Sequence record: OP380604.1
DNA length: 64,000 nucleotides
Reading direction: 5' to 3' (one strand)
Position numbers and translations under genes: made by a program. The notes under the pieces were generated by a model that was not told the origin of the DNA, ran no database searches, and worked only from the letters and a program-made list of their open reading frames with translations. Below, in pieces: positions 32,964 to 37,285 of this stretch. Within the stretch, counting starts at the first letter, position 1, and the number at the start of each line of letters is the position of its first letter.

Positions 32964-32979
32964 ACTAAAGGAGTTTATA

Positions 32980-33969
32980 ATGGGCTTATTAGATACAGCC
33001 GCGAATTACATCAAAGAGATTCCGGGTAAAATTCCAGGAATGGCGAGTACAGCATTATCAGACGGCATTGATTATATTGCGGATAGATTAGCAGATGATC
33101 CGAATTCTACTCCGGACTTTGCGCGTTTTATGCGAGTGATCGAAAATAAAGATTTAGCAAGATCGAATACGTTTCTTGTTCGATTTGGGGATTTTAAATC
33201 CGTTGCTTCCGCGGACGGTATTTTGGGACACTTGGGTCCTCTAGGAGAGACGATTGGTGGGATTGGCGATGCGATTAACAAATCAACTGGTGGATTCTTC
33301 GGAGGCACCAATTTTAGTTGGCATCGTATTCAAGATATCGCGATGAATCAGGGCAAAAAGTTATTGAGTCCGAAGATCAAAAATATTATGGGCGCGATTG
33401 ACCCAACTCTAGTGAGAATGATTCCGGGTGCAGGTGAACTGCTTGACGGATTCTTGGGGTCTGATTATGACGTAAACAGAGATCTGGCGCTTATGGTAAA
33501 ATCGGTAAGCTTGCCTGGTGTTAGCTTTGATACACAATCAAACTACAACGAAAGAAAGCCGTTTACCGAAGTTCGAAATAGAACGGTTGATCCGATCAGA
33601 ATGACATTCTATTGCTCTTCCGATTACGCGGAACGTATTTGGTTCCTAACTTGGATGAACTCGATTCATAATCCCAAGAAGGGTACATTCGGCTTTTATA
33701 GCAATTACGCTCGGGACATTGATATCGTGACTTTAAACAGACGCGGAGTAATGACTTCCGTTGTTCATAGTGATGGGTGTTTTCCAGTTCGAGTTGGCGA
33801 AGTTCAACTGGATTACGAAAACAATAATCAGGTAGCGACGTTCGAGGTAGAATTTACCGTTAGCACAATGATTCATGCTGAACATGCTGGTAAAGATAAC
33901 TTGATCAACTCCGTAGAGTCATTCTATAACAGAACTAAACAAATGGTACGTGGAATCAGGAATGCATAA
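32980..33969 (+). CDS. gp54: baseplate tail-tube initiator
   Basis: start at MGLLD with AAGGAG SD; DLARSNTFLVRF, MVKSVSLPG, DPIRMTF, GCFPVRVGEVQLDYENNNQVATFEVEF. Confidence 0.8.
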   Translation: MGLLDTAANYIKEIPGKIPGMASTALSDGIDYIADRLADDPNSTPDFARFMRVIENKDLARSNTFLVRFGDFKSVASADGILGHLGPLGETIGGIGDAINKSTGGFFGGTNFSWHRIQDIAMNQGKKLLSPKIKNIMGAIDPTLVRMIPGAGELLDGFLGSDYDVNRDLALMVKSVSLPGVSFDTQSNYNERKPFTEVRNRTVDPIRMTFYCSSDYAERIWFLTWMNSIHNPKKGTFGFYSNYARDIDIVTLNRRGVMTSVVHSDGCFPVRVGEVQLDYENNNQVATFEVEFTVSTMIHAEHAGKDNLINSVESFYNRTKQMVRGIRNA

Positions 33970-34027
33970 TCATTATATGATTGCAATACTATCCAGTAAA
34001 CATTGATCGTCAGATTGCGAGCGTAGC

Positions 34028-34143
34028 GAGCTAACTTATTGATTTCATTGAAGAAGACAAAATAGATTCTCATTAAAGATCTATAAGAGATTTTATTTTG
34101 TCTTTGATCAAATAGCGAGCGGCTACGCCGCAGTCTATCGACT
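34028..34143 (+). repeat. dispersed palindromic repeat, copy B
   Basis: 78-bp core identical to 34208-34285; followed by AGCGGCTACGCCGCAGTCTATCGACT. Confidence 0.95.
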
Positions 34144-34163
34144 GTTTACATTAGTTCAAATAG

Positions 34164-34334
34164 TATACTCTTCCAGAAATCGATGATCGCAAGATCGCGA
34201 ACGTAGTGAGCTAACTTATTGATTTCATTGAAGAAGACAAAATAGATTCTCATTAAAGATCTATAAGAGATTTTATTTTGTCTTTTTATAACGAGGTAGT
34301 AACAATCTAGCGGCTACGCCGCAGTCTATCGACT
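34164..34334 (+). repeat. dispersed palindromic repeat, copy C (tandem with B, 180-bp period)
   Basis: TATACTCTTCCAGAAA lead shared with copy A, identical core, same GC hairpin tail. Confidence 0.95.
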
Positions 34335-34458
34335 ATCTCGACTTGATTACTATCTCGTTGGAATGCTCTATAATCGATTCATTGGTGAGTTGATACGTTC
34401 ATACTCATATTGAGTCGAAACGCTTCACCAGTCGTTTGGTGAAGTTTACGAGCGTTTC

Positions 34459-34466
34459 TATAAATA
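34459..34466 (+). promoter_or_regulatory. late promoter TATAAATA for gp26
   Basis: exact T4 late consensus 23 nt upstream of ATG. Confidence 0.85.
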
Positions 34467-34488
34467 AGAACAAATAAGGAGTTTTTAA

Positions 34489-35265
34489 ATGGCAAAGTTT
34501 ACAAGGGACATGCTTCTTGAAGCTGTTCAACAATCGAGCGTCAAGCTGTCTAGTGGAAAGAAAGTTCGAGTTCGTGCTTTCTTGGTGAAAGAATATAAAA
34601 TTTTGATGTTGGCTCATGAAAGTGGCTCTCCTATGGAAGACGCTATGATCCAAATTCTGAAAAACTGCGTGATTGATACGTCTGGAATCGATTTGGAGAC
34701 GCTTCCGATCTTTGACATAGAGACTATCTATCTAGCAGTGTGGAAGCTCTCCAAGGGTACGTCAGTCGTTCCTGTGTCGTTTATTTGTCAGAATATGATC
34801 GACGCTTTGGACGAAGAGGGTAATCCCGTAATGATTGGCGATGAACCGGCTAAACGTCAGTGCTCAACTCAGATCAAGGTAAATGCGGATCTGCGTCGTG
34901 CGAAGTTGTCAAGAGTCCCGGAAAGTATGATTAAGATCAACGATAAGCTTTCTATCAAGATGCGTTATCCGACTGTATATGAATCTGAATTCTTTGACGT
35001 AGAAAAAGAATCCGATTTGTTTGATATCACTATGCGTTGTGTTCAGGAAGTTCATCTTAACGGCGATGTTATGAAAGTCGGAGAAGATATTCAACATGAA
35101 GAGTTGATCGAACTATTGGATTATTTGGACAAAGACGGCTATGAGAAAATGGCTAAGTTTGTTAATGATATTCCACAAACGACTCTTGACTTGGCAGTAA
35201 AATGTCCTCATTGCGGACATGCTGAACCTGTTACGCTGAGAGGGCTCTCCGATTTTTTCGACTAA
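34489..35265 (+). CDS. gp26: baseplate hub assembly protein (gp26/gp51-N family)
   Basis: KVRVRAFLVKEYKILMLA, LPIFDIETIYL, IKMRYP, CPHCG, ends LRGLSDFFD. Confidence 0.85.
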   Translation: MAKFTRDMLLEAVQQSSVKLSSGKKVRVRAFLVKEYKILMLAHESGSPMEDAMIQILKNCVIDTSGIDLETLPIFDIETIYLAVWKLSKGTSVVPVSFICQNMIDALDEEGNPVMIGDEPAKRQCSTQIKVNADLRRAKLSRVPESMIKINDKLSIKMRYPTVYESEFFDVEKESDLFDITMRCVQEVHLNGDVMKVGEDIQHEELIELLDYLDKDGYEKMAKFVNDIPQTTLDLAVKCPHCGHAEPVTLRGLSDFFD

Positions 35266-35435
35266 CCCTCGTGAATGATTCGGTTTACGATTTATTCAAC
35301 GTAAATTACGAAATGCACAAAGAGGGTTGGTCGATTGAAGAGTTGGAAACTACAACTCCCTTCGAACGTGCCATATATCGTACTCTATTCATTAATGACA
35401 GAAATAAACGAGCTAAGGAGGCTAGTGAGTCGTGA
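35259..35435 (+). CDS. gp51: gp51-like C-terminal module, in the -1 frame of gp26
   Basis: read manually: RLTLVNDSVYDLFNVNYEMHKEGWSIEELETTTPFERAIYRTLFINDRNKRAKEASES resembles the T4 gp51 C-terminus; alternative GTG start at 35271. Confidence 0.75.
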   Translation, partial: RLTLVNDSVYDLFNVNYEMHKEGWSIEELETTTPFERAIYRTLFINDRNKRAKEASES

Positions 35436-37285
35436 AAGAAACAAACGAAATACTGGAAGACTCTAGTTTAAAGCTCGCTGTGCAACTTGATGATACCCGA
35501 AAACAAGCGAGGGATCTGGAAACGGCATTCGATATGACTACCGATTCTAGTCTCGACGTTGCGAAAGCAGAGGACTCGCTTGTTAAGTCTATTTCGTCTA
35601 AAGTAAAGGCAACCGATCGCGCCACTGAATATATGGACACGGTTGCCTATGCTCAACGAAATAGTTCTCAAATTGAGGACGAATATCAGAAGGCATTACA
35701 GCGAAGAACAGAGTTGGAAAATAAAATATCGAGTCAGAGTCCTATTATTCGATATTCTGAACAAGCAGCTAATGCTGCCGCACAGACTGAAATTCCAGCC
35801 GGAGACACACCCAGTCCATCACCGACGCCGGAAACAAAACCGGACGTTGATGCGGAGCTGAAAAAGTTCCTGAAAGAGAAAGGTTTAACAAGTCGCAAGG
35901 AGTATGAGGACAAGAAGAAAGCAGACAAGCAGGAGCGAGAAGAAAATAAAGGATTTATTCGCAAGTCTGCCGAATCCCTTGTCAAGAATACTCTTTCCAC
36001 TATTCATGAAACTGCGTCAGGTGCGTTTAGTCAAATGGTCAGTGGAGTTGAATCTGCTGTGTTTAAAGATATTCCTGGATACGGCATGGCTCGATCTGCG
36101 GTAAATACAGTCGCTAGTAAAGGTTCTAAATTTATCAAGGACGTTGGTAGTAGAGGAATTGAAAAGCTCAAGGAAAATAGATTTGAGCGACTGAGAGAAA
36201 AAGAGATTAGTAAATTCCAATCTTCTCGCGAAGTTGAAACTGGCGAAGATGTTAATGCGGAAGAACAATCCAAAAAAGAGAGTCAAGAGCAGCGTCAGGA
36301 GAGAGGTGAGAATAGGAAAGAGCGCGGAGAAAACGACAAGCGTCACAAGACACTAATCAGCACACTGAAAGATCTTGGCAAAATGCTGTTGATCGGTGGC
36401 ATCATGAAGATGTTCGGTGGCTTACTTGGAGGATTAGCAAGTCTCGGCACAGGACTATTCTCGCGATTCGGATTATTGATCACGACTCTTGGTGGATTAG
36501 CTGCTAAATTTGCGTCTGCGATTAAATCGTCGCTTGGCTCAATGTTTGAGAAAGCTTTCCCTGGATTTAAAAAGCCGAAGCCCGATATCGATGTTGACGG
36601 CAAAAAGCCTAGACCGGATGTTGACGCCGACGGCAAAAATCCAAAACCGGATGTTGATTCAAAAGGTAAGCCTAGACCAAACGTTGATGTTGATATTAAC
36701 GGTAAGCCTAAGCCGACTATTGAGCCAGGTAAAACGCCTGATGTTGAAATGAAATCTGGCAAAGCTATTGGTGAAGCTGCTGAGACTATTGAAGGAAAAG
36801 CTGGACAAAAAGCCGCTGCTGCGGGCACAAAAGGTTTCCTTGAAAAAATCGGTGGTAAAGCTGCATTGACCGGAGCTGCTAAAGTTGTGGGTAGAGTTGC
36901 GACTAAGTTTATTCCGTTTGTCGGAACTGCGTTACTACTGAACGATCTTTACGATATTGCGGACTATGTTACCGACGGTAAAGTTTCTGAAATGGTAAAT
37001 AGCGCGGGTGACGCATTGAAAGAGAAACTATCTCCTGTTGCTAATATTCAAAGTGGTATGGCACCAGAAAGTGCTGCTGTTGAAGCAAGTGGAGAGAATT
37101 TGAAGCGAGCCGAGGCAGAAAAGAAAGAACGAGATAGACAACGCGACGCAACGGCGATGCGAGCACAAATGGCAATGACGAGTAACGTTAACAACAACAA
37201 TACCAGCATTTACACAAGCTCATTTGGATTCCCGTCAGATCACGGATATTCAAACTCAACACCATACGGGATGCAAAATCGATGA
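35432..37285 (+). CDS. gp29: tail tape measure / hub protein
   Basis: 617 aa, helical and charged N-half, glycine-rich hydrophobic segment, NVNNNNTS C-terminal motif; follows gp26/51. Confidence 0.75.
   Translation: MKETNEILEDSSLKLAVQLDDTRKQARDLETAFDMTTDSSLDVAKAEDSLVKSISSKVKATDRATEYMDTVAYAQRNSSQIEDEYQKALQRRTELENKISSQSPIIRYSEQAANAAAQTEIPAGDTPSPSPTPETKPDVDAELKKFLKEKGLTSRKEYEDKKKADKQEREENKGFIRKSAESLVKNTLSTIHETASGAFSQMVSGVESAVFKDIPGYGMARSAVNTVASKGSKFIKDVGSRGIEKLKENRFERLREKEISKFQSSREVETGEDVNAEEQSKKESQEQRQERGENRKERGENDKRHKTLISTLKDLGKMLLIGGIMKMFGGLLGGLASLGTGLFSRFGLLITTLGGLAAKFASAIKSSLGSMFEKAFPGFKKPKPDIDVDGKKPRPDVDADGKNPKPDVDSKGKPRPNVDVDINGKPKPTIEPGKTPDVEMKSGKAIGEAAETIEGKAGQKAAAAGTKGFLEKIGGKAALTGAAKVVGRVATKFIPFVGTALLLNDLYDIADYVTDGKVSEMVNSAGDALKEKLSPVANIQSGMAPESAAVEASGENLKRAEAEKKERDRQRDATAMRAQMAMTSNVNNNNTSIYTSSFGFPSDHGYSNSTPYGMQNR

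Follow-up and report, generated by a model that had tools for sequence, protein, structure and literature searches.

A probable programmed -1 frameshift joins gp26 to a gp51-type tail in a T4-like Aeromonas phage

Introduction

Phage lambda uses a programmed -1 ribosomal frameshift to express two tail assembly chaperones, the short G and the long GT, from one gene (Levin, Hendrix and Casjens, 1993; Xu, Hendrix and Duda, 2004, 2013, 2014). The N-terminal part has the chaperone fold, the extension lacks a separate start, and the gene lies directly 5' of the tape measure gene. In the lambda model, the partner of the chaperone part is the tape measure protein, and that of the tail of the long form is a hub or tube protein (reviewed in PMC5009743). 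Here, we describe what is probably an equivalent arrangement in a T4-like phage, located in a stretch of 64,000 nucleotides of sequence record OP380604.1, which was analysed as a whole and is termed the window throughout. The gene in question is gp26 (34489..35265). It ends on a slippery heptamer, T TTT TTC, behind which a gp51-type tail without a recognizable start is encoded in the -1 frame, directly 5' of a candidate tape measure gene. Over this locus the window is 100% identical to avDM12-TAAL, an Aeromonas phage, 99% to Ah1 and 87% to Aeh1 (Straboviridae, Cinqassovirus), and the Ah1 record was used as genome stand-in for whole-genome searches. All features described are encoded on the plus strand, unless stated otherwise.

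A related frameshift occurs in gene 10A/10B of phage T7, where the site is G GUU UUC and the product is a minor capsid protein. Common to T7 and the locus described here are a -1 slip near the end of a structural gene and the movement of a tRNA-Phe from UUC to UUU, a parallel that has also been drawn in PMC12846349. The differences are that T7 makes a minor capsid protein and not a chaperone, and that the P-site codon is another one. Closer to the window are the T4-like phages themselves. In T4, gp51 is essential and absent from the particle, and gp26 and gp51 have been described as hub assembly chaperones (Leiman et al., 2010; PMC3004832). The chaperones of T4-like phages have been identified as gp26 and gp51 (Vladimirov, Gautam and Davidson, Virology 2022), and this study is credited in PMC12846349 with poly-T -1 signals in the genes for the short tail assembly chaperone (TAC), TAC-N, of T4-like phages. 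The PRFect paper, citing the 2022 study, mentions some T4-like phages with a short TAC gene and a long fused one and no frameshift. The pairs described there belong to the same family (PF12322, phrog_150/634) and form the same pair of a short and a long protein as in the window; the difference is that the frameshift is unannotated in the records of avDM12, Ah1 and Aeh1. The concept of a gp26/gp51 frameshift in T4-like phages was thus already published in 2022 and is not new, and the main value of the present analysis is therefore the correction of annotations. In an earlier comparison of genomes, gp51 was reported to be 'missing' from Aeh1, and its length in cyanophages, about 20% of normal, was left unexplained (Sullivan et al., 2010; PMC3037559).

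Results and discussion

The gp26 gene of the window encodes 258 amino acids. The protein matches the Pfam family PF12322 (T4_baseplate; E 1.1e-55, residues 18-257) as well as phrog_150 (E 1.1e-60, profile positions 10-232 of 282), and it is orthologous to T4 gp26 (E 4e-17). The 3' end of the gene reads CTC TCC GAT TTT TTC GAC TAA, with TTT at 35254-35256 and TTC at 35257-35259. The heptamer T TTT TTC (35253..35259) stands in the X XXY YYZ register of the gp26 frame, and we propose a tandem -1 slip of two tRNA-Phe at this site; the 0-frame stop (35263-35265) follows one codon past it. Reading after the slip would restart at CGA (35259) and run through 58 codons, RLTLVNDSVYDLFNVNYEMHKEGWSIEELETTTPFERAIYRTLFINDRNKRAKEASES, to a TGA at 35433-35435, so that the -1 frame extension with its stop occupies 35259..35435. 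The stop overlaps, as GTGA, the GTG start (35432) of an open reading frame (ORF) of 617 amino acids. The predicted fusion, gp26-51, is thus join(34489..35259,35259..35435), with 315 amino acids, and corresponds to a long chaperone form, TAC-NC. The original prediction, made from the letters and their ORF list, had pointed to the heptamer and its register, the -1 frame peptide with its 58 codons and the overlap of the -1 stop with the next start. It had also named GTG 35271 as the sole nearby start, with no clear Shine-Dalgarno (SD) sequence. These points were all found to be correct, and the 20 nt preceding the GTG (GATTTTTTCGACTAACCCTC) hold no purine-rich Shine-Dalgarno sequence.

The combination of the heptamer with an open -1 frame exceeds chance. 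Among the 88 ORFs of at least 100 amino acids in the window, just one other has an in-register heptamer no more than 10 codons from its end with at least 40 open codons in the -1 frame behind it, and this ORF lies on the minus strand. Over the whole window, TTTTTTC occurs 8 times, compared to 29.4 +/- 5.6 times in dinucleotide shuffles. Such a strong depletion would fit an avoidance of slippery sites that arise by chance.

Conservation in relatives had been set as a test in the original prediction, and it is extensive. A slippery heptamer in register, either T TTT TTC or T TTT TTT, is present in 18 of the 19 isolate genomes that encode the tail in the -1 frame. All 13 isolates that were first compared carry T TTT TTC; these are Aeromonas phages from five genera, Cronobacter phage S13, Paraglaciecola phage GD1, and the cyanophages syn9, ACG-2014b and P-SSM4. 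Two Vibrio phage lineages have the same heptamer, bringing the isolates in which it is invariant to 15. T TTT TTC is likewise found in every one of 80 metagenomic contigs from IMG/VR that are related to the cyanophage gp26. The tail follows in the -1 frame in 79 of these contigs, and the 80th ends too early to tell. Caulobacter phage Cr30, Sinorhizobium phage phiN3 and Acinetobacter phage nACB2 have T TTT TTT instead at the same place, again with the tail in the -1 frame, and this heptamer is equally slippery. The codon before the heptamer varies (GAT, AGT, TCT, GCT, AAT, GGT) and always has T as its third base, and the codon after it varies as well. Heptamer position 1 does not enter any new codon in decoding. 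Variable flanking codons combined with an invariant synonymous T at this position indicate a constraint on the nucleotide and not on the protein, as a tandem slip requires. On the protein level, amino-acid conservation in the -1 frame begins exactly at the slip site (FFR[LIV]). The arginine that follows the slip is kept in all 15 isolates with T TTT TTC, while the overlapping residue of the 0 frame varies (D, A, G or V). In Cr30, phiN3 and nACB2 this arginine is replaced by serine or tyrosine. From the Aeromonas phages to the cyanophages and Ackermannviridae, the tail is conserved at about 25% amino-acid identity.

A deviating site was seen in Salmonella phage PhiSH19 (Kuttervirus, Ackermannviridae; 1900-2150), in which a gp51-like tail (…SESMPWHLDLL…) again follows gp26 in the -1 frame, with GAG ATT TTC ATT TAA as the site. 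Only the A-site Phe codon is able to re-pair there, and a non-canonical slip of a single tRNA may therefore be possible.

A natural control is provided by phages in which gp51 is a full-length gene of its own. None of the ten that were compared contains the heptamer; these are T4, a Mosigvirus, a Jiaodavirus, Acinetobacter phage ZZ1, Aeromonas phages 25 and avDM5, GEC-3S, Cronobacter phage VP8, Klebsiella phage AM_K6 and one T4-like IMG/VR genome. Several of them lack even the Phe-Phe dipeptide, and T4 has GAG TTC TTT GAG at this position. The T4-type gp51 tail is found in about 1200 phage records (full-length and in frame in most records inspected) and the tail in the arrangement of the window in about 165.

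The homology of the tail explains what the -1 frame would add. The similarity to the T4 gp51 C-terminus that had been claimed for this peptide is borne out by BLASTP (E 1e-5) and, more strongly, by a match to phrog_634, 'baseplate hub assembly catalyst' or gp51, with E 8.2e-15. In the gp26/gp51 family profile phrog_150, the tail covers positions 231-280 and gp26 ends at 232, so that the two reading frames abut seamlessly within one profile. T4 gp51 (249 amino acids) carries PF12322 over residues 1-201, the same Pfam model as T4 gp26, and in addition a C-terminal tail. Its residues 15-185 align with the gp26 of the window and its residues 200-248 with the -1 frame tail. In the multiple alignment, DVFKLLVNPDE of T4 gp51 stands opposite DFF (frame 0) and then RLTLVNDS (frame -1) of the window. 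Thus, T4 gp51 is a gp26 paralogue that carries the tail, and it represents the in-frame equivalent of the predicted 315-residue fusion. A single PF12322 gene is found in the near-identical Ah1 genome, the closest complete one, whereas in T4 gp51 is described as essential.

The tail could in principle be expressed by other routes. It might be translated independently, as a free gp51-like peptide of about 54 residues that starts at GTG 35271 or at another internal codon and is not joined to gp26. A GTG is indeed present at 35271, and PX29, phiAS5, syn9, P-SSM4 and others have been annotated with short genes for a 'baseplate hub assembly catalyst'; the short gp51 of cyanophages has also been treated as a gene (Sullivan et al., 2010; PMC3037559). 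The start candidates, however, are not conserved across the 13 phages, and none is preceded by an SD sequence. The GTG of the window, six codons into the tail, corresponds to GTC in Aeh1, to GTT in PX29, phiAS5, 65.2 and AS-zj, to CTA in Ahp1 and to GCC in S13, and no ATG, GTG or TTG occurs before codon +33 in phages 65.2 and AS-zj. We thus rejected an independent start at GTG 35271, a codon that is neither conserved nor equipped with an SD sequence. The starts chosen by GenBank annotators differ as well and are not homologous, being TTG at +3, ATG at +6 and ATG at +20. Conservation sets in at the slip site, 5' of every candidate start, and independent initiation leaves the invariant synonymous T at heptamer position 1 unexplained. 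We consider this route very unlikely. Still harder to believe, to a degree that we hardly take it into account, is that the -1 ORF is a decayed and unexpressed relic of a former gp51 gene. The lack of its annotation in the avDM12, Ah1 and Aeh1 records and the report of gp51 as 'missing' in Aeh1 (Sullivan et al., 2010; PMC3037559) would fit such a relic. Against it, the frame is open, its amino acids are conserved as far as the cyanophages and Ackermannviridae at the identity given above, and in many lineages there is coupling between its stop and the start of the gene behind it.

The same fusion would also arise by slippage of the RNA polymerase, which would add one U in the run of six T, followed by normal translation of the minority mRNA. 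Efficient transcriptional slippage usually needs eight or nine T, and six are short for it. The site is nevertheless a homopolymer, which reaches seven T in three lineages, and transcriptional slippage on runs of T or A has been documented in other systems (reviewed in PMC5009743). In the great majority of lineages, however, the run has not been lengthened, although a change of TTC to TTT would be silent in the 0 frame, and the motif matches the classic register for a tandem slip exactly. Transcriptional slippage therefore appears very unlikely to us as the source of the fusion, and a programmed ribosomal slip is the reading that we prefer.

If gp26 is the counterpart of G, a chaperone fold is expected in its N-terminal part. 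A confident AlphaFold2 model of gp26 was obtained, with a predicted local distance difference test score of 85.7. When the model was compared with representatives of the PDB by VIA-align, residues 1-91 matched best the HK97 tail assembly chaperone (2ob9, Z 7.6) and two related prophage proteins, 3fgx (Z 7.5) and B. subtilis YqbN (3klu, Z 6.8). YqbN is encoded by the skin prophage and is a paralogue of XkdN, the chaperone of PBSX. Behind these three, the following match has Z 4.3, and ORF12 of the lactococcal phage p2 reaches Z 2.8. These Z values are moderate, and the three top structures are mutually consistent and set apart from the rest. Foldseek found no significant match in the PDB, with 2ob9 having the top probability listed (0.47), and the family profile, run against the sequences of the PDB, returned nothing below E 0.29. 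Taken together, the model supports a tail assembly chaperone fold of the gp26 N-terminal domain. Beyond the T4-like phages, significant matches among predicted structures were obtained for the gp26 model in Ralstonia phage phiRSL1, Pseudomonas phage PaBG, Erwinia phage Yoloswag, Bacillus phage SP-15 and Campylobacter phage CP220. On the basis of these modelled structures, the gp26 type of chaperone may be widespread in large myoviruses.

Two candidate stimulatory elements flank the heptamer. Upstream, an SD-like AGAGGG (35239..35244), 8 nt 5' of the heptamer, may act as a stimulator of the dnaX type. Its predicted pairing with the anti-SD (-6.3 kcal/mol) is stronger than that of 92% of the other windows of the gp26 gene, and in 10 of 18 phages this site ranks above at least 85% of the windows elsewhere in the gene. 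Downstream, a long-range stem is predicted at 35265..35334, beginning 5 nt past the heptamer. Its core is formed by ACCCUC (35265-35270) and GAGGGU (35322-35327), its full arms extend over 35258-35270 and 35322-35334, and the fold of the RNA has a minimum free energy of -32.9 kcal/mol with z -5.2. The CCCUC/GAGGG core also appears in the folds of Aeh1, PX29, phiAS5 and Ahp1 and not in other clades, and beyond the Aeh1 clade the folds of single RNAs are unremarkable. With an SD-like element 5' and a stem 3' of the heptamer, the layout may match that of E. coli dnaX, with both elements being candidates here. The lambda G/GT system reportedly works without such stimulators.

We propose the following sequence of events. 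Most ribosomes would terminate in the ordinary way at the TAA at 35263 and release the 258-residue gp26, the short form TAC-N. A minority, with two tRNA-Phe on UUU-UUC in the P and A sites, would slip back by one base, re-pair with UUU-UUU, read CGA and the following codons of the -1 frame, 58 in all, and produce the 315-residue gp26-51 fusion. It would correspond to gp51 of T4, where the long form has a gene to itself. Judging from lambda G/GT and from T4 genetics, both forms would bind the candidate tape measure protein encoded directly downstream, the tail domain would recruit a hub or tube component, neither form would end up in the virion, and the rate of slipping would set their ratio. 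On this comparative basis, we estimate the probability that the locus produces two tail assembly chaperones, a short and a long one, from one gene via a programmed -1 ribosomal slip of the lambda G/GT type at about 85%. This reading is supported by the conservation of the heptamer, the lack of a conserved start, the absence of the heptamer in phages with a separate gp51, the presence of one gene of the family and the chaperone fold. At the level of sequence, every comparative test able to refute a programmed -1 frameshift came out in its support. The proposal with which this analysis started, that gp26 and gp26-51 form the G/GT equivalent, is thereby strengthened by heptamer conservation, collinearity with T4 gp51, the control with separate gp51 genes and the fold.

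Several points weigh against this interpretation. The 315-residue fusion is a predicted product. The sole run that came up in a search for RNA and proteome data is a wastewater library with 4% of the sampled words. The run of six T could in principle also support transcriptional slippage. The Z scores for the chaperone fold are below the level that is deemed safe on its own by the notes of the tool. A downstream RNA stimulator common to all clades was looked for and not found: RNAalifold returned no structure for 8 proteobacterial phages, the structure that it gave for 75 sequences of the cyanophage type is weak (-7 kcal/mol), and no compensatory changes were seen in the outer helix of the stem. 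The SD-like element coincides with codons for an Arg/Glu-Gly motif that is conserved and occurs in T4 gp26 too, and its signal is therefore confounded by coding constraint. Finally, the partner gene is a candidate tape measure gene, deduced from features other than homology.

Compared to lambda G/GT, two differences are obvious. The lambda heptamer is G GGA AAG, and gp26 is about twice as long, with an extra alpha/beta region that contains a zinc ribbon following the chaperone domain. The likeness to T4 consists of an orthologous gp26 and of a gp51 that is collinear with the predicted fusion; T4 differs in having two divergently transcribed genes, and its gp26 ends with GAG TTC TTT GAG TTA CTA TAA, which is not slippery. 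For annotation, the consequences are direct. The tail is unannotated in avDM12, Ah1 and Aeh1, and elsewhere it is entered as a stand-alone 'baseplate hub assembly catalyst' of 40-60 amino acids with starts that do not correspond. The joined coding sequence given above would restore a full-length equivalent of gp51, a protein described as essential in T4, and the frameshift reading would put these phages under the same chaperone logic of tail length as lambda and P2. Since the heptamer is conserved in the sampled sequences of this arrangement (18 of 19 isolates, 80 of 80 contigs), it could serve as a simple marker in automatic annotation.

It is tempting, if rather doubtful, to extend the argument to the T4 superfamily, by which we mean the Straboviridae outside the T4-proximal group, the Kyanoviridae, the Ackermannviridae, and the phiM12-like and Cr30-like phages. 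The -1 frameshift might be the ancestral way of making both chaperone forms, and the two-gene state of T4 might have arisen later, when gp26 was released from the slippery site by a duplication. Each clade might then tune the ratio of the short to the long form with signals of its own, such as the stem 5 nt past the heptamer in the Aeh1 clade or the non-canonical G ATT TTC in Kuttervirus.

The gene that follows the tail (35432..37285, GTG start, 617 amino acids) is a candidate for the tail tape measure gene on grounds of position, size and composition. Its Shine-Dalgarno sequence AAGGAGG (35415..35421) lies inside the -1 extension, 10 nt before the GTG. The gene is found between gp26/51 and gp3 in all relatives, its product has Gly-rich hydrophobic segments, and its size is near that of T4 gp29 (590 amino acids). 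A search of the protein atlas yielded no more than leads, to clusters of tape measure proteins that include T4_Tape_measure (0.82-0.89), and the protein matches phrog_11300 and, weakly, phrog_3933. In Caulobacter phage Cr30, a gene annotated as tape measure follows the tail ORF, with one small ORF in between. From position, size, the Gly-rich hydrophobic segments and the atlas leads, the 617-residue protein is likely the tape measure. The label gp29 that the original prediction had given to this gene found no backing in sequence similarity: the best BLASTP value against T4 gp29 is E 1.1, phrog_1283 is matched neither by this protein nor by any in the Ah1 genome, and no Pfam tape measure family was hit. 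A word search of 5.8 billion proteins returned only six close relatives, all from Aeromonas-type phages or from contigs. The missing similarity to T4 gp29 and the small number of relatives point to a tape measure that was replaced or has diverged extremely in this clade.

The local gene order is gp4, gp2, gp54, gp26, the small ORF of the tail, the 617-residue gene, gp3 and gp1, and it is the same in all relatives examined. The opposite strand carries, divergently, gp48, gp53, a hub protein of phrog_350, gp5 and then wedge genes. Upstream of gp26 we note a late promoter candidate, TATAAATA (34459..34466), 22 nt 5' of the gp26 start, which we take to be the T4-type late promoter consensus from established knowledge of T4 late promoters. 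A Shine-Dalgarno sequence of gp26, AAGGAG, can be read at 34476-34481. A tandem duplication lies in the gap between gp54 and gp26 (33970-34488, 520 nt). Its period is roughly 180 nt, and its copies (33992-34105 and 34172-34285) are 92% identical. Each copy holds an inverted repeat of 18-21 nt (AAGACAAAATAGATTCTC / GAGATTTTATTTTGTCTT), and an exact 26-nt repeat, AGCGGCTACGCCGCAGTCTATCGACT, is found in the same gap at 34118 and 34309. The neighbouring gp54 is one intact ORF of 330 amino acids in the window (32977-33969), compared to two coding sequences, 54_2 and 54_1, annotated in the Ah1 record (1083-2070); the split may reflect an error of sequencing in Ah1 or a gene that is truly disrupted there.

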